Sequence record: NC_019408.1
Reading direction: 5' to 3' (one strand)
DNA length: 64,000 nt
Shown in pieces: positions 47,201-55,123 of the stretch (position 1 is its first letter; each line of letters opens with the position of its first letter). A program made the translations under genes and the position numbers. Under the pieces are notes generated by a model that saw only the letters and a list, made by a program, of their open reading frames with translations, was not told the origin of the DNA and searched no databases.

Positions 47201-47976
47201 TGGCTATCCAGAACCCCCACTCCACCACGCCGGGCGTCATGCCCCACCTGACGCCGGGCGAGATCGGCGTCAACAAGGCCGATGACATCCTCTGGTTCCG
47301 GTCCGAGGGCCGCCGCGTGCCGATCATCCTGAGCGATCTGGATCGGGCGCCGCCGCTCGACGGCCTGACCGGCGCGCCGCTGACCCTGGAAGGTGGCCAG
47401 CCGATCTGGAACGCGCATCTGGCCCCGTCCTCCGTGGTCAATGGGCAGGTCAAGGTCGATCTGCCGCCGGCGACGGGCCTGCACGCCATGCCCAGCGTCC
47501 TGCTGCAAGGCCTGGGAGCCGATCGCGCCCTGGCGGCCAACGATCTGGACCTCTCGCCCTTCTACGTCCGGTCCGACTCCATCACCCTGACCCAGTTGGC
47601 GTTCAGCGTCCGCTCGGCGGGCGCGCCGGCCATGCGGGTGGGGATCGTCGACAGCTTCGGCGTGGTCCAGGCCGACATTCTGGTCGCCGCGCCCGTGGTG
47701 GGCGCCAACGTGGTCAACCTCTCGCCGGTGCTGACGCTCCAGCGCGGCGTCTACCGCACGATCCTGGCAACCACCGGCGCGGTGACGATCGGGGTGGTCA
47801 CGGGCGCGCGCATGGAGCAGGGCTGGGACATCATCGGGGACACGCCCTCCTTCATCCACGGCTACAGCGGCTCGAAGAACACCGGCGGGGGGATCGGCAG
47901 TTTGCCGGGCCTGACCGCGCGGCGCTCGGGCGTGCCGGGTCAGGATCATTCGGTCCTGATGCGCTGGACGGCGTAG
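47200..47976 (+). CDS. Fibre-associated protein
   Basis: TTPGVMPHLTPGEIGVNKADDILWF, same module. Confidence 0.7.
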   Translation: MAIQNPHSTTPGVMPHLTPGEIGVNKADDILWFRSEGRRVPIILSDLDRAPPLDGLTGAPLTLEGGQPIWNAHLAPSSVVNGQVKVDLPPATGLHAMPSVLLQGLGADRALAANDLDLSPFYVRSDSITLTQLAFSVRSAGAPAMRVGIVDSFGVVQADILVAAPVVGANVVNLSPVLTLQRGVYRTILATTGAVTIGVVTGARMEQGWDIIGDTPSFIHGYSGSKNTGGGIGSLPGLTARRSGVPGQDHSVLMRWTA

Positions 47977-48081
47977 TGGGGAGAGCCGGGTGGGGCTTTG
48001 TATCGCTGGGGGAGCGAGGGACGGGCCGCTCCCCGGCGGCCCACCCGCTCTTTATAGACGGCCCTTTCCCGGCCCGCAAGA

Positions 48082-48118
48082 CGTGAATCTTGACATGGTG
48101 GAAGATCGGGGTTAACCT
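48082..48118 (+). promoter_or_regulatory. CGTGAATC-TTGACA promoter
   Basis: TTGACA-N17-TAACCT. Confidence 0.75.
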
Positions 48119-48148
48119 GCGCGCTCATCTGGAGTTTCGAGCGCCACC

Positions 48149-48412
48149 ATGGCTGAGCTTGTCCGCATCTATCACCCTGAGACGAACGAGCCGTTCGACG
48201 TGATCCCGTCGACCGCCGAACGTCTGCGCCTGGGTGATGGTCCCGACGGGCTGGTCTGGCTCTCGCAGCCCTTCGAGCGCGTCGCTGTCGAAGCCGCGCC
48301 GGAAGCCCCCAAGGGGCGAGGTCGTAAGCGCGTCAGCGCGCCCGTCTCGGAAGAAGCCGAAGACGACGGGTGGCGTGACGTGCCGACCGAGGAAGATCGC
48401 GAAGCCGCGTAA
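48149..48412 (+). CDS. Hypothetical protein
   Basis: 87 aa; codon bias. Confidence 0.65.
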   Translation: MAELVRIYHPETNEPFDVIPSTAERLRLGDGPDGLVWLSQPFERVAVEAAPEAPKGRGRKRVSAPVSEEAEDDGWRDVPTEEDREAA

Positions 48413-48465
48413 GCCGCGTAAGGCGCTTCGTCTTCCACTCTGCTGAAATTCGGTCTCAGTCCCAT

Positions 48466-48541
48466 GTCGGTCTAGCTCATGGGGTAGAGCGGCGGTCTCC
48501 AAAACCGCGCGTGGCAGGTTCGAGTCCTGCGTCCGGCGCCA
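48466..48541 (+). tRNA. tRNA-Trp(CCA)
   Basis: GCGGT-CTCCAAA-ACCGC arm; TTCGA T-loop; encoded CCA. Confidence 0.9.
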
Positions 48542-48546
48542 TTTCG

Positions 48547-48620
48547 CATCCGTAGTATATAGGTGATTACAGCGCGTTGCCAACGCGTAGAGTCGGGTTC
48601 GAGTCCCGACGGATGCTCCA
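48547..48620 (+). tRNA. tRNA-Gly(GCC)
   Basis: GCGCG-TTGCCAA-CGCGT. Confidence 0.9.
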
Positions 48621-48624
48621 TTTC

Positions 48625-48698
48625 GCGGGTATAGCTCAAAGGGAGAGTTGCTGCCTTCCAAGCAGAAGATGCGAGTTCGAGCCTCGCTATCCGCTCCA
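48625..48698 (+). tRNA. tRNA-Gly(TCC)
   Basis: CTGC-CTTCCAA-GCAG. Confidence 0.9.
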
Positions 48699-49006
48699 AC
48701 CTCGTGGTGAGGTGAGAACGCCCTCCTCATGCACCGCTTCGGCGGTAAAGTAGGCTCCAGCCGAAGAGATGCGGGACCAGGGGACCCCGCCACCACGAAC
48801 GAAGTGCGCCCCAGGTACGCCTCTGACCGAGAAAGCCCGCTGGCCGTGGGTGAAGTGTATGGTCAAGCGTCTGGGTCCCCGTCCGCCAGGACCGGCGAAG
48901 GCCATATGCGCCGAATTCCTGGACCGGATCGTAGGAGGGGAGCGTTGGCGCCGGCCCAGCAGGGAAGGGTGAAGAGCCCAGCCGGCAATTTTCTTCAACA
49001 ACAAGC

Positions 49007-49035
49007 TTGACAGCCGTCGAGTTTCGTGAGAGCCT
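49007..49035 (+). promoter_or_regulatory. Sigma70-type promoter P1
   Basis: TTGACA..CGTCG....GTGAGAGC, nearly the same as P2. Confidence 0.7.
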
Positions 49036-49045
49036 CCTCAACATT

Positions 49046-49108
49046 ATGACGCACCTCCTCACCCGTTACGAACGCGAGGCCACCGGCCTCGATACCACCA
49101 CCGCCTAA
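49046..49108 (+). CDS. Candidate leader peptide MTHLLTRYEREATGLDTTTA
   Basis: Near-leaderless ATG after P1; stop codon lies in a hairpin loop; upstream of tRNA-Glu and tRNA-Asp. Confidence 0.5.
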   Translation: MTHLLTRYEREATGLDTTTA

Positions 49109-49140
49109 AAGCGGTTTTGGTCCGAGGCCTCTTGTGATGT

Positions 49141-49218
49141 GGCCCGGTCGTCTAGCGGTTTGCAGGATTCCTGACTTTCAATCAGGAGAGCGGAGTTCGA
49201 GTCTCCGTCGGGCTTCCA
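49141..49218 (+). tRNA. tRNA-Glu(TTC)
   Basis: CCTGA-CTTTCAA-TCAGG. Confidence 0.9.
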
Positions 49219-49243
49219 CACCCCCAACTCATCTCTGAGCTTT

Positions 49244-49318
49244 GGTGCCGTCGTATATGGGTTATTATCACCGGCTGTCTCCCGGTGGAAACGGGTTCGA
49301 GTCCCGTCGGCATCGCCA
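49244..49318 (+). tRNA. tRNA-Asp(GTC)
   Basis: ACCGG-CTGTCTC-CCGGT. Confidence 0.9.
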
Positions 49319-49381
49319 GCCCTCGCAGCAAATCCAGGTTCCAGCGCGGCTGTTCCGCGCGCCTGCATGCACGAGGCTACC

Positions 49382-49603
49382 ATGTTTTTCGATCCCTCCT
49401 CGCAGTCGAGCGACGCGCTCCTGCGCCACGTCTCCACCCAATCTCCGTATGCGGAAGCGGCTCGCACCGAGTTGCTGTCCCGAGGCCTCGTTCCGCTCCT
49501 GACGCGGTTCAACGGCTGGCGCCTCGCCCCGAGCGCGCCGTTTCCGCAGCACCTCATCCCGCGCCCCGATCCGCTCGCGAAGTACACGTGGCGGGCGGGA
49601 TGA
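49382..49603 (+). CDS. Hypothetical protein
   Basis: GAGG RBS; 73 aa. Confidence 0.5.
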   Translation: MFFDPSSQSSDALLRHVSTQSPYAEAARTELLSRGLVPLLTRFNGWRLAPSAPFPQHLIPRPDPLAKYTWRAG

Positions 49604-49622
49604 AAAATATTCACCACGACGC

Positions 49623-49651
49623 TTGACATCCGTCGGGAGTTGTGAGAGCTT
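49623..49651 (+). promoter_or_regulatory. Sigma70-type promoter P2
   Basis: TTGACATCCGTCGGGAGTTGTGAGAGCTT. Confidence 0.7.
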
Positions 49652-49744
49652 ATGGACTGTCACGGATCACGACACTCCTCGGAGTGCAAAAGCGTGATCC
49701 TTCGTTTTTCACGGCCGCCAGCGGGTGGCCAGTCGAGAGTTGTC

Positions 49745-49882
49745 ATGTTCGCCTTGTCGCATCTCAGCCTGAGCACGAAAGCCGCCTCCCCGGCGACGCT
49801 TTCGCTTGCCCTGCTGGCGACGGCCGCGAAGCCCTCGACCAAGCCGACCACCTCGGCCTCGCACTCGACGGAGACCCACTAG
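49745..49882 (+). CDS. Leader peptide of tRNA array A (45 aa)
   Basis: 42 of 44 codons after Met encode P/T/K/L/H/A/S, the amino acids of the 14 downstream tRNAs. Confidence 0.8.
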   Translation: MFALSHLSLSTKAASPATLSLALLATAAKPSTKPTTSASHSTETH

Positions 49883-49946
49883 GGCTCTCGTCTCGGGTGC
49901 AGGCCTTGGAGCCGCACCCGCTACCTACATCCTGTAGACCTAGCGC

Positions 49947-49985
49947 AAGGCGGCTCCTCACCAGGGAGACCGCCTTTTCTTTTTC
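49947..49985 (+). terminator. Attenuator terminator before array A
   Basis: AAGGCGGCTCC/GGAGACCGCCTT stem followed by TTCTTTTT. Confidence 0.85.
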
Positions 49986-49996
49986 GCGTTGATCAT

Positions 49997-50072
49997 CGGG
50001 GTGTAGCTCAGTCGGTAGAGCGCTCGGTTCGGGACCGAGAGGCCGTGGGTTCGAGTCCCGCCACCCAGACCA
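49997..50072 (+). tRNA. tRNA-Pro(CGG)
   Basis: CTCGG-TTCGGGA-CCGAG. Confidence 0.9.
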
Positions 50073-50079
50073 ACGCCAT

Positions 50080-50156
50080 CGGGATGTAGCTCAGTTTGGG
50101 AGAGCGCGCGGCTGGGGGCCGCGAGGCCGCAGGTTCAAGTCCTGCCACCCCGACCA
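50080..50156 (+). tRNA. tRNA-Pro(GGG)
   Basis: CGCGG-CTGGGGG-CCGCG. Confidence 0.9.
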
Positions 50157-50161
50157 ACAAC

Positions 50162-50234
50162 GCTGTTGCGCGTGGCTTCGCGCCCACCCCTTGGTATGGG
50201 GCGGTAGAAGGTTCAATTCCTTCCAGCAGCACCA
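50162..50234 (+). tRNA. tRNA-Thr(GGT), reduced D-arm
   Basis: CCCC-TTGGTAT-GGGG; GCTGTTG/CAGCAGC acceptor. Confidence 0.75.
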
Positions 50235-50239
50235 ACAAC

Positions 50240-50309
50240 GCCGATGCCTCTGGGAGGACGCGCCTTTCGTAAGGGTGCGAGGTGGGTTCAATCCCCACTT
50301 TCGGCTCCA
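50240..50309 (+). tRNA. tRNA-Thr(CGT), compact
   Basis: CGCGCCT-TTCGTAA-GGGTGCG; 3-nt D-loop. Confidence 0.72.
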
Positions 50310-50364
50310 TCAAACAGCCTGCGGGCTATATCGGAGATCAAGTTTCATAGCCTCCAGGCTATAT

Positions 50365-50451
50365 GGATGTGTCACCTCAGTGGCGAGAGGAACGGGCTCT
50401 TAATCCGTCAGCGCAAGCTCACCGTGGGTTCGAGTCCCACCACATCCTCCA
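50365..50451 (+). tRNA. tRNA-Lys(CTT), long variable arm
   Basis: ACGGG-CTCTTAA-TCCGT. Confidence 0.85.
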
Positions 50452-50456
50452 ACAAT

Positions 50457-50546
50457 GCACAAGTGACCCGAGCGGCGAAGGGCGTCGACTTTTAATCGAC
50501 TAGGCGTCCAGCCTCACCGAGGGTTCGAGTCCCTCCTTGTGCTCCA
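50457..50546 (+). tRNA. tRNA-Lys(TTT), long variable arm
   Basis: GTCGA-CTTTTAA-TCGAC. Confidence 0.85.
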
Positions 50547-50549
50547 TGT

Positions 50550-50636
50550 GCGAATGTGGCGGAACTGGTAGACGCGCCGGCCTCAGGTGCCGGTGCCCTT
50601 CGGGGCGTGTGGGTTCGAGTCCCACCTTTCGTACCA
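50550..50636 (+). tRNA. tRNA-Leu(CAG)
   Basis: CCGGC-CTCAGGT-GCCGG. Confidence 0.9.
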
Positions 50637-50643
50637 ACGACAT

Positions 50644-50731
50644 GCCTTGCTGGCGGAAGTGGTAGACGCACTGTTCTCAAAAAGCAGGCCGGGCGACCGG
50701 GCTCTGGGTTCGATCCCCAGGTGAGGCACCA
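50644..50731 (+). tRNA. tRNA-Leu(CAA)
   Basis: CTGTT-CTCAAAA-AGCAG. Confidence 0.9.
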
Positions 50732-50738
50732 AGACTGA

Positions 50739-50826
50739 TGCGAAGTGGCGGAAACTGGTAGACGCACCGGCATGAGAGGCCGGCGCCCTTCGGGGCGTGA
50801 GGGTTCGAGTCCCTTCTTCGCGACCA
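50739..50826 (+). tRNA. tRNA-Leu(GAG)
   Basis: CCGGC-ATGAGAG-GCCGG. Confidence 0.88.
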
Positions 50827-50906
50827 ATGTCCCGATCGGGAAGATTCCAGGCGGCGCGGCGCTCGCGACACCCGGATTTTCCCGATCGGGAAGACGACGA
50901 GATTAT

Positions 50907-50977
50907 GCTGATCGCCGCTGGGCGGGGAGCGGGTTGTGTCCCCGCTAGGCACGGTTCGATCCCGTGGGTCAGTACCA
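50907..50977 (+). tRNA. tRNA-His(GTG), compact, no G-1, A73
   Basis: AGCGGG-TTGTGTC-CCCGCT; absence of G-1 matches the Caulobacter-type tRNA-His. Confidence 0.75.
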
Positions 50978-50982
50978 GATAC

Positions 50983-51053
50983 GGGGTATGCGCAGGGCGC
51001 AGGCATCCTTTGCAAGGAAGTCGGGGTGGGTTCGAGTCCCACATACTCCACCA
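50983..51053 (+). tRNA. tRNA-Ala(TGC), compact D-arm
   Basis: CATCC-TTTGCAA-GGAAG; GGGGTAT/ATACTCC acceptor includes G3-U70. Confidence 0.75.
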
Positions 51054-51057
51054 ACAT

Positions 51058-51147
51058 GGAAGGTCAACCGGACAGGCGCGCCGGGACTGCCTCGAAAGCA
51101 GATCGCACTCTCCGGGGTGTGGGGATCGAGACCTCGGCCTTCCTCCA
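51058..51147 (+). tRNA. tRNA-Ser(CGA)
   Basis: CTGC-CTCGAAA-GCAG; long variable arm. Confidence 0.88.
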
Positions 51148-51151
51148 ATAT

Positions 51152-51241
51152 GGTGAGCGAACGGGACAGGCGTGCCCGGTCCGCCTGGAAAGCGCGACGC
51201 ACTCTCCGGGGTGTGGGATTCGAGTTCTCCGCTCACCGCCA
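51152..51241 (+). tRNA. tRNA-Ser(GGA)
   Basis: CGC-CTGGAAA-GCG; long variable arm. Confidence 0.88.
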
Positions 51242-51245
51242 ACAG

Positions 51246-51336
51246 GGTAGGCGAACCGGACAGGCGCGCCGGCGCCGTTTGCTAAACGAGCGGCACTCTC
51301 CGGGGGTGTGGGATTCAAGCTCTCCGCCTACCGCCA
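51246..51336 (+). tRNA. tRNA-Ser(GCT)
   Basis: CGT-TTGCTAA-ACG; long variable arm. Confidence 0.88.
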
Positions 51337-51612
51337 TTTTGATGTTGACGCCGGCCAGCACCGATGTCATACGTCACGACAGAGCCAACGCCCTCGGCCG
51401 GGTTGGTGGATGTGCCGGTTGCATCGCGCCCCGTCGAGCCCTAGTAGCTCTTGCCGTGGAGTTTTCCGCCTCCCTCCCAGACAAGGAGGCGGACCCCTAC
51501 ATCGCGATCCAGTGATCGTCGGCGACGGGCGCCGTCAGAGCCCCTTGCGCGCGGGAACGCTGCGGAGGGGATCGTCCCGACCACATTTTTCGACCCACGT
51601 TAACTTTTCTTC

Positions 51613-51641
51613 TTGACCTTCCCGAAAACGTAGTGTAGCTT
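51613..51641 (+). promoter_or_regulatory. Sigma70-type promoter P3
   Basis: TTGACC-N17-TAGCTT; predicted start site about 51648, so the ATG is leaderless. Confidence 0.75.
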
Positions 51642-51648
51642 TCCCGTC

Positions 51649-51744
51649 ATGAGCAAGTCGTACCGTCAATTCGTGCAGATTCAGGTCGTCCGGAATTTCC
51701 GGGCGGGCCGTTCGCGCATGGATGATGGCGGGACCTTTATCTAG
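51649..51744 (+). CDS. Leader peptide of tRNA array B (31 aa)
   Basis: Codons 5-18 (YRQFVQIQVVRNFR) are all read by tRNAs of the downstream array. Confidence 0.8.
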   Translation: MSKSYRQFVQIQVVRNFRAGRSRMDDGGTFI

Positions 51745-51770
51745 GTCCAGACACCTCAACCCAATTCGCG

Positions 51771-51810
51771 AAAGGCCCGCCTGGACACCCAGGCGGGCCT
51801 TTTTCTTTTT
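51771..51810 (+). terminator. Attenuator terminator before array B
   Basis: AAAGGCCCGCCTGG-ACAC-CCAGGCGGGCCTTT followed by TTCTTTTT. Confidence 0.9.
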
Positions 51811-51867
51811 CCGTTTCGCTGATCCGCAGGAGATCGCAGATGAACAACGGGGGCTAGTCCTCCACAT

Positions 51868-51952
51868 GGATGCTTAAAGCTGGAGGGCTCCAGCCGGGGG
51901 CTGTAAACCCCCTCTCTTCGGAGGAGTGGTTCGATCCCACAAGCATCCACCA
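51868..51952 (+). tRNA. tRNA-Tyr(GTA)
   Basis: GGGGG-CTGTAAA-CCCCC; long variable arm. Confidence 0.88.
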
Positions 51953-51957
51953 ATCAT

Positions 51958-52033
51958 GGACTCGTAGCTCAGCAGGTAGAGCGCCGGCTTGAAACCCCGG
52001 AGGTCGGAGGTTCGATTCCTCCCGTTTCCACCA
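51958..52033 (+). tRNA. tRNA-Phe(GAA)
   Basis: Canonical spacing gives loop TTGAAAC; C31-C39 mismatch. Confidence 0.85.
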
Positions 52034-52038
52034 ACAAC

Positions 52039-52114
52039 GCCCGATGAGCCAGATGGGAAGGCACCGCTTTGACATGGCGGCATTGAGAAGGTTCGATTCC
52101 TTCATCAGGCACCA
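52039..52114 (+). tRNA. tRNA-Val(GAC)
   Basis: CCGCT-TTGACAT-GGCGG. Confidence 0.88.
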
Positions 52115-52119
52115 ACCAC

Positions 52120-52195
52120 GCAAGTGTAGCTCAGTTGGTAGAGCAGCGGACCGATAATCCGCCCGTCCCTGGTTCGAGTCCAGGCATTTGCACCA
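52120..52195 (+). tRNA. tRNA-Ile(GAT)
   Basis: GCGGA-CCGATAA-TCCGC (C33). Confidence 0.88.
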
Positions 52196-52202
52196 TTTCT
52201 GA

Positions 52203-52278
52203 TGTGGCATAGCTCAGGGGTCAGAGCGCGCGCTTGATAAGCGTGAGGTCGGTGGTTCGAGACCACCTGTCACTACCA
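52203..52278 (+). tRNA. tRNA-Ile(GAT)
   Basis: CGCGC-TTGATAA-GCGTG. Confidence 0.88.
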
Positions 52279-52312
52279 ATTCCCAGGCCCGGTGGAGATG
52301 CGCCGGTTCTGT

Positions 52313-52386
52313 AGGCGATTAGCTCAATGGTAGAGCAGGGGTGCCACATACCTCGGTCGTAGGTTCGATTCCTACATCGCCCACCA
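52313..52386 (+). tRNA. tRNA-Val(CAC), atypical G32/C33
   Basis: GGGGT-GCCACAT-ACCTC. Confidence 0.78.
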
Positions 52387-52392
52387 ACATGT

Positions 52393-52466
52393 TGAGGGTT
52401 CGTCTAACGGTAGGACGCCTGGGTCTGGTCCAGGTAATCTAGGTTCGAGTCCTAGCCCCTCATCCA
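52393..52466 (+). tRNA. tRNA-Gln(CTG)
   Basis: CCTGG-GTCTGGT-CCAGG. Confidence 0.88.
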
Positions 52467-52472
52467 AGTTGT

Positions 52473-52547
52473 TCTCGGGTCGTCTAATGGTAAGACATCT
52501 GGTTTTGGTCCAGAGGATTGGGGTTCGATTCCTTGGCCGAGAGCCAA
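52473..52547 (+). tRNA. tRNA-Gln(TTG)
   Basis: TCTGG-TTTTGGT-CCAGA. Confidence 0.88.
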
Positions 52548-52563
52548 CTGCTTTAGAGTTCAT

Positions 52564-52637
52564 TCCAGTCAATGCACAAGGTGTGCAGCGGCACTGTTAA
52601 TGCCTGTGAGCCCGGTTCGATTCCGGGGTCTGGAGCC
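52564..52637 (+). tRNA. tRNA-Asn(GTT)
   Basis: GGCA-CTGTTAA-TGCC. Confidence 0.88.
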
Positions 52638-52663
52638 AACACGCCGGCCAAGGCCGGTCATGC

Positions 52664-52746
52664 GCCCTGGTAACCGAGGGGGATTACGAATCCCTTAGTC
52701 GTAGCAGGAGTTGAAAAGGGTGGTTCGAATCCACTCCAGGGTGCCA
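52664..52746 (+). tRNA. tRNA-Arg(ACG)-like, no D-arm, long variable region
   Basis: GCCCTGG/CCAGGGT acceptor; GGGA-TTACGAA-TCCC; intact T-arm and CCA. Confidence 0.6.
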
Positions 52747-52753
52747 AATCTAT

Positions 52754-52836
52754 AGCGCGCAGGCCGATCAGGATCATCGTCAGGCGTCGCCCTCCGAAGG
52801 CGAAGAGGCCCGGTTCGAGTCCGGGGCGCGCTGCCA
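52754..52836 (+). tRNA. tRNA-Arg(CCG), enlarged D-loop
   Basis: TCGCC-CTCCGAA-GGCGA. Confidence 0.8.
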
Positions 52837-52839
52837 ACT

Positions 52840-52917
52840 GCGCGGGTAGCTCAACGGAACCAGAGCAGCCGTCTTCTACACGGTGGGTTGGGGGTTCGAG
52901 TCCCTCCCCGTGCGCCA
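52840..52917 (+). tRNA. tRNA-Arg(TCT)
   Basis: GCCGT-CTTCTAC-ACGGT. Confidence 0.88.
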
Positions 52918-53254
52918 AAACTTGACGGGCAATGCCGAATCGCCCAACTTCGACCCTGGCTCTCGGTGGGCCACGATTGCACGCCGTCGGTGCCCTGGCC
53001 GTACACCCAGGGAGCAGCCCGGCGGCGTTCCAACACGGTTTCTGGACGATCTTCGAACGCGGCTTGCCGTGGAGGGGTGCTGGATAGGGCCGAGGTAGGA
53101 GGAACCATCGAGCATCTCCTAATCCCGGCCTGGGCCTCCTGGGGGCTCCGCTGGGTCGATCAGGGCCTGACCCGACCCCGGAGATGCGCCGACCTAGATC
53201 ACCCAGGATCGCTGGGTCGGTTGAAAGGGTCTGAAATTTTCTGGCTCCTATGTG

Positions 53255-53285
53255 TTGACACGCATTTCGGAGCCGGCTACAACCC
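53255..53285 (+). promoter_or_regulatory. Sigma70 promoter with no downstream ORF
   Basis: TTGACA-N17-TACAAC (GCTACAAC). Confidence 0.7.
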
Positions 53286-53424
53286 TCCTCGTAGAGCGGC
53301 GCTGGGGCCTGAAGGCCCCAATCGTTGAGCCTCTGCGTTGTCGTCAGAAACGGCCCGCCGGCATCCCGCCGCGCGGGCCGTTTCGTCATGGGCGTCATGC
53401 GACCTTGAGTCCACCGTGGGTAGT

Positions 53425-53463
53425 GTCGTGAATCTTGACTTTCGACCACCTTTCCGGTAGCTT
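53425..53463 (+). promoter_or_regulatory. GTCGTGAATC-TTGACT promoter
   Basis: N17 then TAGCTT. Confidence 0.75.
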
Positions 53464-53508
53464 CCCCTTCATCACCAACGCTCATAAGTCGGGGACTAGA
53501 GAGCCGAT

Positions 53509-53907
53509 ATGTCGCAAGACCACACCGGCTCCGCAACGCAGAGCCAAGAACACATCTTTCGTAAGCTGGATGAGCTTGGCGCAATGCACATGCGTACCCG
53601 CGAGGACATGGCCGAAGTCAAGGAGAAGGTGAAGACCATCGCCTCCTCTCAGGAGCGCTTTGAGCGCGACGTTTGGCGCGAGATGGACATTCGCCACGCC
53701 GAGACCAAGGAGCAACTGGCCGCCATCAAGAATCAAACCGCCGATCGGATCGACGAGATCGAGGCCAAGGTGAACACCATTCGCGAGGAGCGGATCGCCG
53801 AAAAAGCCCAGTGGCGTGGCCCCGAGAAGGTCATTGCCGGCATCGTCGCCCTGGCGGGCGGCGTCACCGCGATCGGCGTTCTCTGGAGCATCTTCAAACC
53901 CCACTAA
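53509..53907 (+). CDS. Coiled-coil protein with a C-terminal transmembrane helix
   Basis: Helical body; IAGIVALAGGVTAIGVLWSIF. Confidence 0.7.
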   Translation: MSQDHTGSATQSQEHIFRKLDELGAMHMRTREDMAEVKEKVKTIASSQERFERDVWREMDIRHAETKEQLAAIKNQTADRIDEIEAKVNTIREERIAEKAQWRGPEKVIAGIVALAGGVTAIGVLWSIFKPH

Positions 53908-53941
53908 GCCTACAGTCAAGCTTGTTCGCCTGCGGCCAGAA

Positions 53942-53982
53942 GTCGCGGTTCTTGACACCCCCCAGCGGCCCGAGCTAACCAT
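53942..53982 (+). promoter_or_regulatory. Variant promoter GTCGCGGTTC-TTGACA
   Basis: GCTAACCAT -10; GANTC absent. Confidence 0.55.
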
Positions 53983-54012
53983 AGGGTCATCTGTTCCTGG
54001 GGAGTTTCCTAG

Positions 54013-54234
54013 ATGGCTGCTGCGCTTACCCTCGTCTCCTGCGAGACGAACTTTTCGACCACCACGGACACCGATCCGGACGCGGCGCACGAGCGCCTCA
54101 TTCTGGTCCTCAACACCGCCTCAGAAGCGGGCCTTGGTGAAATGACGTTGGAAGTCAAAGAAGAGATCGAGGCCCTGCTCAAGCAGGCGTCTATCGAACT
54201 CTCGAACTGCCGGATCGTGGGGGGAGTTCCTTAA
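54013..54234 (+). CDS. Hypothetical protein
   Basis: GGAG RBS. Confidence 0.6.
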   Translation: MAAALTLVSCETNFSTTTDTDPDAAHERLILVLNTASEAGLGEMTLEVKEEIEALLKQASIELSNCRIVGGVP

Positions 54235-54256
54235 TCGCCATCCCAGAGGGAGCGAC

Positions 54257-55123
54257 GTGTCCGAGTCTTCCGAATTCAACCCGCTCGACCAATCCCAGTT
54301 CCCTCCTCGCCTCACCAAGGCTGCTGCGCGTCAGGCGCGGCGCCAGGAGCGCAGCCAGAAAAAGGACCCCACGGCGAACAAGCCCAACTACAAGGCGCTC
54401 GAAGCCAAGACTGAACGCCAGAAGCGCTACATCCAGGCGCTGAAGGCCGGCGAGAGCGCCATCGCCATCGGCGGGGCCGGCACGGGGAAGACCTACATCC
54501 CGTCCCGGCTCTTCGCCAAGAAGCTGATCGAAGGCAAGACCGAACGCCTGATCATCGCCCGCGTCACCGCCTCGCGGGCCAAGCACGCCCTGGGCTTCCT
54601 GCCCGGCAAGCTCGAAGCCAAGCTGGCCCCGTGGCTGGTGCCGGTGATCGAGGGCGTCAAGGCGGAAATGAACGCCCAGACCTATACGCAGTTGCAGGAG
54701 GCCGGCAAGATCGAGTTCGCCTCCTTCGAGCACATGCGCGGCCGGACCTTCGGCGAGTGCTGCGTCCTGCTGGACGAGGCCCAGAACGCCGACTACAAGG
54801 ACCTGAAGATGGTCCTGACCCGTTGGGGTGAGAACGCCCAGTACGCGGTCACCGGCGACGTCGACCAGATCGACGTGGACGACTCCGGGCTGGACACGGT
54901 CATCGACATCGTCGAGGCCAACGACATCCCCATCCACGTCATCGAGTTCACCGACGAAGACGTCGTGCGCTCGCCCATGGCCAAGGCCTGGGTCAAGGCC
55001 TTCTCCGCCCACGAGGGCAAGGACGGCCGGCCCCGGCGCTTCCACCGCCCGGCTGTCAGGAATCTTGACGCTTTGCCGGCGTTCATCGATAATGGCCATG
55101 TCACGAAACCCGTGGCATCGTGA
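54257..55123 (+). CDS. phoH: PhoH-family ATPase
   Basis: GGAGTGKT Walker A; LGFLPG.L..KL.PW; MRGRTF; LLDEAQN; LTRWGE; GDVDQID. Confidence 0.93.
   Translation: MSESSEFNPLDQSQFPPRLTKAAARQARRQERSQKKDPTANKPNYKALEAKTERQKRYIQALKAGESAIAIGGAGTGKTYIPSRLFAKKLIEGKTERLIIARVTASRAKHALGFLPGKLEAKLAPWLVPVIEGVKAEMNAQTYTQLQEAGKIEFASFEHMRGRTFGECCVLLDEAQNADYKDLKMVLTRWGENAQYAVTGDVDQIDVDDSGLDTVIDIVEANDIPIHVIEFTDEDVVRSPMAKAWVKAFSAHEGKDGRPRRFHRPAVRNLDALPAFIDNGHVTKPVAS
55055..55093 (+). promoter_or_regulatory. GTCAGGAATC-TTGACG promoter inside the phoH 3' end
   Basis: N17 then GATAAT. Confidence 0.6.

Follow-up and report, generated by a model that had tools for sequence, protein, structure and literature searches.

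A short leader lies immediately upstream of tRNA array B, the last of three plus-strand groups of transfer RNA (tRNA) genes found at 48.4–52.9 kb in Caulobacter phage CcrRogue (JX100814/NC_019408). CcrRogue, hereafter Rogue, belongs to the subfamily Dolichocephalovirinae, as one of the phiCbK-like jumbo siphophages. The window analyzed here is nucleotides (nt) 1–64000 of its genome, and the region under study comprises the 255 nt upstream of array B. We propose, at a probability of about 0.7, that the array B leader is a ribosome-mediated (leader-peptide) transcription attenuator that would gate the phage tRNA genes according to the decoding speed of their own codons. The anatomy of the leader, its conservation, the rule that governs its composition, and its alternative folds are observations. 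All anatomical predictions for such an attenuator that could be checked by comparing phages were borne out. The leader is composed of the following features, given together with the array that they precede (ORF, open reading frame).

51613–51618, plus strand: -35-like hexamer TTGACC of the putative promoter P3; TTGAC[ACG] does not vary among 16 phages
51636–51641, plus strand: -10-like hexamer TAGCTT of promoter P3, 17 nt after the -35 hexamer
51649–51744, plus strand: leader ORF, 31 codons and TAG; predicted leaderless, with no Shine-Dalgarno sequence
51661–51702, plus strand: sensing run, codons 5–18 (Y R Q F V Q I Q V V R N F R)
51684–51694, plus strand: region 1, GGUCGUCCGGA, 5′ strand of the anti-antiterminator hairpin, within codons 12–16; pairs with 51698–51709
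51698–51716, plus strand: region 2, UCCGGGCGGGCCGUUCGCG, with alternative pairing to region 1 or region 3
51731–51748, plus strand: stop-codon hairpin GGGACC/GGUCCA, the last pair being a C.A mismatch; the stop codon lies across the loop and the 3′ strand
51767–51784, plus strand: region 3, CGCGAAAGGCCCGCCUGG, both the 3′ strand of the antiterminator and the 5′ arm of the terminator
51770–51812, plus strand: intrinsic terminator (51770–51803; 15 pairs, 10 of them G-C) and its T-tract
51868–52917, plus strand: tRNA array B (Tyr, Phe, Val, Ile, Ile, Val, Gln, Gln, Asn, Arg-like, Arg CCG, Arg TCT)

A leader ORF matched to tRNA array B

The leader ORF encodes a peptide of 31 amino acids (aa), MSKSYRQFVQIQVVRNFRAGRSRMDDGGTFI. 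Codons 5–18 are TAC CGT CAA TTC GTG CAG ATT CAG GTC GTC CGG AAT TTC CGG, letter for letter as in the original prediction made from the sequence of this region. These 14 of the 31 codons form an uninterrupted run that specifies only Y, R, Q, F, V, I, and N, a set identical to that of the array B tRNAs. In the six frames of the window this is the longest run drawn from the set {Y,F,V,I,Q,N,R}; the next longest has 10 codons, mostly Arg, and is located in off-frame, GC-rich sequence. In the window, 0.004 runs of at least 14 codons are expected. Based on the usage of the phage, in which the set has a frequency of 0.315, the per-position probability of such a run is 1e-7. Several members of the run are rare among their synonymous codons, namely ATT (4% of Ile codons), AAT (7%), CGT (8%), CAA (17%), and CGG (17%).

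The default ARAGORN search of array B identifies genes for Phe GAA, Val GAC, Ile GAT (two copies), Val CAC, Gln CTG, Gln TTG, and Arg TCT. Ten cognate tRNAs had been claimed for the run. Seven of the ten are standard ARAGORN calls and Tyr, Asn, and Arg(CCG) are supported by fold, loop, and identity, whereas Arg(ACG) did not hold up as well. The Tyr GTA gene (51868–51952) has a type-II cloverleaf fold and is annotated in the Brevundimonas relatives; a comparison of Rogue with phiCbK reveals a compensatory change in the anticodon stem. The gene called 'Ile aat' by ARAGORN (52564–52638) contains the loop CTGTTAA and reads as Asn GTT, and the Arg CCG gene (52750–52836) has ~90% identity to an annotated gene of CcrPW. 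The Arg(ACG) element (52650–52746) contains a TTACGAA loop, a T arm, and an acceptor stem, with no D arm and no cloverleaf as its minimum free energy (MFE) structure; relaxed ARAGORN settings return Arg(cct) in Rogue and Arg(acg) in BL57. Its identity as an Arg(ACG) tRNA in Rogue is doubtful. At the level of the amino acid, the same seven are encoded by array B in every lineage.

Conservation of composition across lineages

The comparison set consisted of 16 phages in 8 lineages: the Rogue/BL10 group, the phiCbK group, BL57, BL47 (Bertelyvirus), Colossus, CcrPW, the Brevundimonas phages Kikimora and Bajun, and Bambus/Kabachok. A single regular expression matches the promoter-ORF-terminator layout in all 16 (TTGAC[ACG], 17 nt, a hexamer, exactly 7 nt, ATG, an ORF of 31–32 codons, a gap of 29–33 nt, GGCCCG[CT]C...G[GA]CGGGCC, and a T tail). 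Start codon, frame, the length of 31–32 codons, and stop position are common to these phages, and the stop codon occupies a fixed site although its identity may be TAG, TAA, or TGA. Synonymous changes are frequent within the ORF (TAC/TAT, CGT/CGC, TTC/TTT, CAG/CAA), and the sole indel within it among close relatives is a single codon, CGC (Arg), in frame. This pattern is indicative of a coding constraint. Outside the ORF, the length of the spacer between stop codon and terminator varies by 1, 2, and 4 nt between lineages.

The leader peptides (brackets enclose the run) are MSKS[YRQFVQIQVVRNFR]AGRS..., MSKT[YRQFVRQIQVVRNIR]AGRS..., MSKS[YRQFVRQIQFVRVNR]AGRS..., MMT[YRNNVRQIRVRQFN]LAGRS..., MMT[YRNNVQQIRVRQFN]WTGRS..., MMT[YRQNVQNIRVVRFYR]AGRS..., MTS[YRQNVQNIRVVRFNR]TGRS..., and MFT[YRNNVQQIQVVRFNR]AGHS.... 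The order of residues within the run is shuffled between lineages (compare YRQFVQIQVVRNFR, YRNNVRQIRVRQFN, YRQNVQNIRVVRFYR, and others), and hydrophobic residues are exchanged for polar ones (F/N, V/R, N/V/F, F/I/N/Y). Nevertheless, 13 of the 15 alternative residues found in the run belong to the array set, compared with 23% for random non-synonymous neighbors (P = 4e-7). The two out-of-set residues are in the last column of the run, in the Colossus/CcrPW lineages. Between Rogue and the phiCbK group the run contains one amino-acid change (Phe>Ile), which falls in the loop of the hairpin formed by regions 1 and 2 (hairpin 1:2). Judged from these sequences, the run is conserved as a composition, not as a sequence.

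A scan of IMG/VR with the antiterminator-terminator pattern yielded known isolates and chance matches only. A metagenome scan with a stricter pattern gave at least 120 matches; no upstream run of the array B set longer than 3 was present among the matches listed, a result that serves as a negative control only.

Putative promoter P3 and a predicted leaderless transcript

The ATG had been placed at the start site of P3, and the arrangement was found as stated: TTGACC and TAGCTT are separated by 17 nt, and TAGCTT is followed after 7 nt by the ATG at 51649. In 16 of 16 phages the two hexamers are 17 nt apart and the ATG follows the -10 hexamer after 7 nt, while the sequences vary. P3 belongs to a family of TTGAC-N18-TANNNT motifs, which has 5 matches in the window compared with 0.21 expected.

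48090, 51613, 53435, and 57086 (plus strand) and 20037 (minus strand): TTGAC-N18-TANNNT matches from the window scan

The four plus-strand matches, P3 included, are intergenic and located before genes. The members of this family are probably host-sigma promoters of the phage. We infer that the transcript starts at or next to the AUG, giving a leaderless messenger RNA (mRNA). In C. crescentus, 375 leaderless mRNAs have been described that are translated as well as leadered ones (PMC4117421), and leaderless translation of the array B leader in the Caulobacter host is plausible. No promoter motif was found between the T-tract and tRNA-Tyr, a gap of 55 nt in Rogue and ~35 nt in phiCbK. Array B would therefore be expressed only via read-through of the terminator, as far as the sequence evidence goes.

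Alternative folds of the leader RNA

Region 2 can pair either with region 1, forming hairpin 1:2, or with region 3, in which case 51701–51716 pairs with 51767–51782 in an antiterminator of ~15 base pairs (bp). In Rogue, the folding energies are -16.8 kcal/mol for hairpin 1:2, -30.2 for the antiterminator duplex, -31.1 for the terminator, and -10.2 for the stop-codon hairpin. Conservation of these helices was assessed by pair counts in a 12-sequence alignment and by folding 10 sequences that cover all 8 lineages. The full-length MFE structure contains hairpin 1:2 and the terminator in 10 of 10 sequences, and the same RNA cut before the 3′ arm of the terminator adopts the antiterminator fold, again in 10 of 10.

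For hairpin 1:2, 91.7% of alignment cells are paired and three pairs are changed on both sides. None of 500 shuffles reaches the observed value, and slid controls give 24–58%. The two-sided changes include the loop-closing pair, A-U in some phages and U-A in others, and the Colossus lineage, which has a different helix at this site (CGCCAG/UUGGCG). The antiterminator is 85.6% paired. Its 9-bp core is formed in 12 of 12 sequences at seven positions and in 10–11 of 12 at the other two, and in Bajun a G>A change in region 2 is matched by a C>U change in region 3. Covariation in related phages had been proposed as a check on the attenuator, and compensatory changes are present in both of the competing helices. 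In the terminator, 98.8% of cells are paired. RNAalifold also predicts that the distal part of region 2 is sequestered in a small conserved hairpin.

The stop-codon hairpin is part of the full-length MFE structure in 9 of the 10 folded sequences; in Bajun it appears only in the truncated fold. Its sequence differs between phages (GAGGG/CCCUC, GUGGGC/GCCCAC, CAGAU/AUCUG).

These folds modify the earlier picture of the switch in part. GGGCGGGCC (51701–51709) had been predicted to pair with the terminator arm GGCCCGCCT (51774–51782), and the two are indeed complementary. This strand had also been described as partly sequestered by GTCCGGA/TCCGGGC. The hairpin is real, but it extends over 51684–51709 and covers all of GGGCGGGCC. 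A third pairing, between GTCCAG (51745–51750) and CTGGAC, was rejected: it is not conserved, and its bases belong to the conserved stop-codon hairpin, in which GUCC pairs with GGGACC.

Proposed mechanism and ribosome stalling

In the mechanism we propose, host RNA polymerase would start at P3 and produce a transcript that begins at or next to the AUG. A 70S ribosome would then translate the 31-codon ORF, in which codons 5–18 specify the seven array B amino acids, many of them by rare synonymous codons. When decoding is fast, or when the ORF is not translated, regions 1 and 2 would pair and the small second hairpin would tie up the remainder of region 2. Region 3 would then be free to form the terminator with region 4, the 3′ arm, and transcription would stop before the tRNA genes. 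When the tRNAs are scarce or uncharged and decoding is slow, the ribosome would still be positioned on region 1, with its A site at about codons 10–14, as region 3 emerges. Region 2 would in this case pair with region 3 to form the ~15-bp antiterminator, the terminator would not form, and array B would be transcribed. The outcome would be a negative feedback by which the supply of precisely these tRNAs follows demand. Translation of the ORF, as well as the direction and the specificity of regulation, are what we infer here.

The effect of a stalled ribosome was modeled by masking a footprint from -15 to +12 relative to the first nt of the A site, followed by equilibrium folding in seven lineages. 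A footprint at about codons 10–14 converts the terminator to the antiterminator in 5 of the 7 (Rogue, Kikimora, Bajun, Bambus, and BL47). The rare Ile codon ATT is invariant in 16 of 16 leaders. Its position has the highest antiterminator probability of any stall in the footprint model for Rogue and Kikimora, and a near-maximal one for Bajun and Bambus. The rare codons of the run and the invariant placement of ATT are consistent with a tuned sensor.

A second leader upstream of array A

An independent, attenuator-like unit that obeys the same composition rule is found at 49623–49985, upstream of the second tRNA gene group, array A. The features concerned, and the first tRNA group, are as follows.

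49623-51: array A leader promoter, TTGACA-N17-GAGCTT
49745–49882: array A leader ORF, gp083, 45 codons
49947–49985: array A leader terminator, just before tRNA-Pro
49997–51336, plus strand: tRNA array A (Pro x2, Thr x2, Lys x2, Leu x3, His, Ala, Ser x3)
First tRNA group ("array 0"), plus strand: Trp-Gly-Gly and Glu-Asp

In the gp083 peptide, MFALSHLSLSTKAASPATLSLALLATAAKPSTKPTTSASHSTETH, 42 of 45 residues are P, T, K, L, H, A, or S, the amino acids of array A, and every one of the array's 14 tRNA species has codons in the ORF. Across the six frames, gp083 is the top-scoring segment for the array A set (mean 20.9, standard deviation 5.4; binomial P = 1.6e-12). The composition is kept in 11 phages, with 87–93% of residues in the set, and in Kikimora and Colossus (MTFSTHKPSTLKPATGAASLAHASLLTPATSKPSLSRSL) the residue order is again shuffled. 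There is essentially no overlap in composition between the two leaders, and each corresponds to the array that it precedes. With seven amino acids per leader, they account for 14 of the 20 and for nearly every isoacceptor. It is possible, at somewhat better than even odds in our estimation, that the Dolichocephalovirinae possess a two-array closed-loop tRNA homeostat, in which each large array would have its own codon-matched attenuator, decoding capacity would be gauged separately for each codon set in the course of infection, and the tRNA genes would be transcribed only on demand. If this is the case, host tRNA shortage during infection would be real, would be sensed, and would provide the selective reason for carrying the arrays.

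Upstream of tRNA-Glu, the segment 49007–49140 contains a promoter-like TTGACA, a 20-codon ORF (MTHLLTRYEREATGLDTTTA, 49046–49108), and a hairpin GGCCTCG...CGAGGCC that overlaps the end of the ORF. The phiCbK record annotates a terminator at the equivalent position, and the composition of the ORF does not match Glu/Asp. In Roseobacter phage DSS3P8 (L162, 1121–1418), two small ORFs (48 and 49 aa) are located directly upstream of tRNA-Arg, Thr, and Pro. They were discarded as candidate leaders; neither contains a leader-like codon run, and by eye they resemble DUF1127 small proteins.

Weighing the attenuator against other explanations

Several results weigh against an attenuator of the type proposed. 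The original prediction was that a stall within the sensing codons would expose the antiterminator, and in the footprint model this is borne out for about codons 10–14 and not for the remainder: stalls at codons 5–9 leave hairpin 1:2 intact, and stalls at codons 15–18 cover region 2. Because only part of the run is positioned to induce read-through, the rest must, by assumption, act by cumulative delay. The entire run could thus function as a delay line, in which slow decoding anywhere would hold the ribosome over region 1 as region 3 emerges; a complete arrest early in the run would be expected to give super-attenuation. In phiCbK and Colossus, the terminator wins at equilibrium for all stalls, and consequently the switch must be kinetic, as in classical attenuators. 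The codon-anticodon match is complete by amino acid and incomplete by anticodon, owing to the doubtful Arg ACG in Rogue. The -10 hexamer TAGCTT is weak compared to the E. coli consensus and below the threshold of an E. coli-type scan. The lineages are related, and the conservation of structure among them is therefore not fully independent evidence. Finally, a leader rich in W, G, E, or D was looked for before the first tRNA group (Trp-Gly-Gly, Glu-Asp), with no clear case.

Any ribosome slowing over region 1 would yield the same structural outcome, and just ~5 codons are ideally placed. The leader could accordingly be read as an attenuator that responds to global translation capacity (ribosome availability, coupling) or to general amino-acid starvation instead of to the supply of array tRNAs. 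A sensor of this kind would, however, have no need of codons confined to the array's seven amino acids in all 8 lineages, or of a second leader confined to the seven of the other array, and the rare codons read by array tRNAs point to codon-specific sensing. We consider this explanation unlikely. We regard as rather improbable the proposal that the ORF encodes a functional, basic 31-aa peptide with its own promoter and terminator, the tRNAs being expressed by constitutive leak-through and the match to the array being a coincidence. The ORF is conserved, its N-terminal two thirds well so, and it is listed as a hypothetical protein in a few genome records. On the other hand, the run swaps hydrophobic and polar residues (F/N, V/R, N/V/F) yet remains within the tRNA set, the C-terminal third varies in sequence but keeps its RNA hairpin, and the conserved AGRS motif coincides with the antiterminator strand. 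Moreover, the same composition rule applies to a second, unrelated leader and its array, and coincidence would have to account for the chance probabilities of 1e-7 and 1.6e-12.

The strong RNA structures could also be taken to indicate an untranslated element, either a constitutive partial terminator or processing signal, since a terminator alone would lower transcription flux, or a direct tRNA binder resembling a T-box. This is very improbable given that start codon, frame, length, and stop position are all conserved, that the indel is in frame and many changes are synonymous while spacers outside the ORF vary by non-multiples of three, and that the distance from the -10 hexamer to the ATG is fixed at 7 nt. 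No T-box or other Rfam family is found at the leader. The last explanation, to which we attach almost no credence, is that the region forms part of an antisense protein-coding gene. Rogue does contain an open antisense frame (minus-strand ORF 51867–51535, 110 aa), and its relatives have long antisense open stretches. Their open lengths, however, range from 74 to 167 aa, such a gene would read the terminator as poly-Lys, and none is annotated in the fetched regions of the 16 phages. The stop-to-terminator spacer varies in length among lineages, by 1, 2, and 4 nt, so that no antisense frame is maintained across them, and the antisense ORF was rejected.

Relationship to known systems

Leader-peptide attenuators are found in E. 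coli and Salmonella upstream of amino-acid operons (trpL, hisL, leuL, thrL, and ilvL) and in the pheA and pheST leaders. Of these, thrL and ilvL are multi-amino-acid leaders, and leuL uses the rare regulatory codon CUA. The Rogue leader shares with the attenuators of amino-acid operons a short ORF rich in regulatory codons, four RNA regions whose 1:2, 2:3, and 3:4 pairings exclude one another, and an intrinsic terminator upstream of the target genes. It differs from them in several respects. The targets of the amino-acid-operon attenuators are biosynthetic enzymes, whereas the Rogue leader precedes tRNA genes that are encoded by a phage. Its codons represent seven amino acids and almost all isoacceptors in the array, its mRNA is predicted to be leaderless, and its stop codon is contained in a separate hairpin with no overlap with region 2. 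In the E. coli pheM leader/pheST attenuator, the decoding of Phe codons is sensed and an aminoacyl-tRNA synthetase is controlled. This too is a leader peptide that senses codon decoding and controls a component of the translation apparatus; there the component is the synthetase for one amino acid, while in Rogue it would be the tRNAs themselves, in sets of seven amino acids.

Ribosome-mediated attenuation is known to operate in the alphaproteobacteria, for example in the case of trpL in Sinorhizobium meliloti (PMC6614838). A precedent for a leaderless sensory ORF exists in mycobacteria, where stalling in leaderless polycysteine short ORFs remodels downstream RNA (bioRxiv 10.1101/834739). The Rogue leader would resemble these, with ribosome stalling within a codon tract remodeling the RNA, but the mycobacterial ORFs unmask a ribosome-binding site for genes of Cys metabolism, whereas the Rogue element would act on a transcription terminator before tRNA genes. 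T-box riboswitches likewise sense tRNA status through competing terminator and antiterminator helices. They do so by binding uncharged tRNA directly, without translation, in contrast to the Rogue element with its conserved ORF, and an Rfam scan of 47500–54500 (E<=1) contained no T-box (RF00230) match.

The proposed mechanism, ribosome-mediated attenuation, is a known one, and what differs here is the tRNA-gene target, the breadth of seven amino acids per leader in two leaders, and the phage setting. No description of leader-peptide control of tRNA genes was found in the full-text literature searched, including the papers on the phiCbK genome and on a Cbk-like Erythrobacter phage. If the proposal is true, it would represent, in the literature searched and to our knowledge, the first leader-peptide attenuation of tRNA genes themselves. 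Why phages carry tRNA genes is a long-running question; the candidate answers are that the genes compensate for codon usage, that they replace a host pool after its degradation, or that they provide escape from defenses that cleave tRNA. A sensor that opens the arrays upon slow reading of the matching codons would show directly, by genetic evidence, that the supply of tRNA becomes limiting in infection, and would make the question testable by simple reporters in C. crescentus NA1000. A compact, leaderless multi-codon sensor might also be of use as a reporter of decoding capacity. The composition rule itself, by which the codons of a leader correspond to the downstream tRNAs, provides a criterion for recognizing similar phage elements and unannotated non-canonical tRNAs.

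Other tRNA genes and RNA elements in the region

The non-canonical or unannotated tRNA genes of the window include Thr CGT (50239–50308) and Ser CGA/GGA/GCT (51058–51336), as well as the Tyr GTA, Asn GTT, and Arg CCG genes of array B. The deposited Rogue record lists 23 tRNAs. In the phiCbK genome paper these phages are said to lack tRNAs for Tyr and Thr, and Rogue is said to lack Ser.

Directly 3′ of tRNA-Gly(TCC), at 48702–48798 in the window, is a match to the Rfam skipping-rope RNA (RF02924), with 45.8 bits compared to a gathering score of 36.7. Between the array B terminator and tRNA-Tyr, at 51829–51857, a strong Shine-Dalgarno sequence (GGAGAT) is associated with a 5-codon mini-ORF, ATG AAC AAC GGG GGC TAG. 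Its equivalents are MNNGG* in Colossus, MTGGD* in the Brevundimonas phages, and MTGN* in BL47. The phiCbK group has lost the mini-ORF by deletion but retains GGAGATC and a small GATC hairpin.

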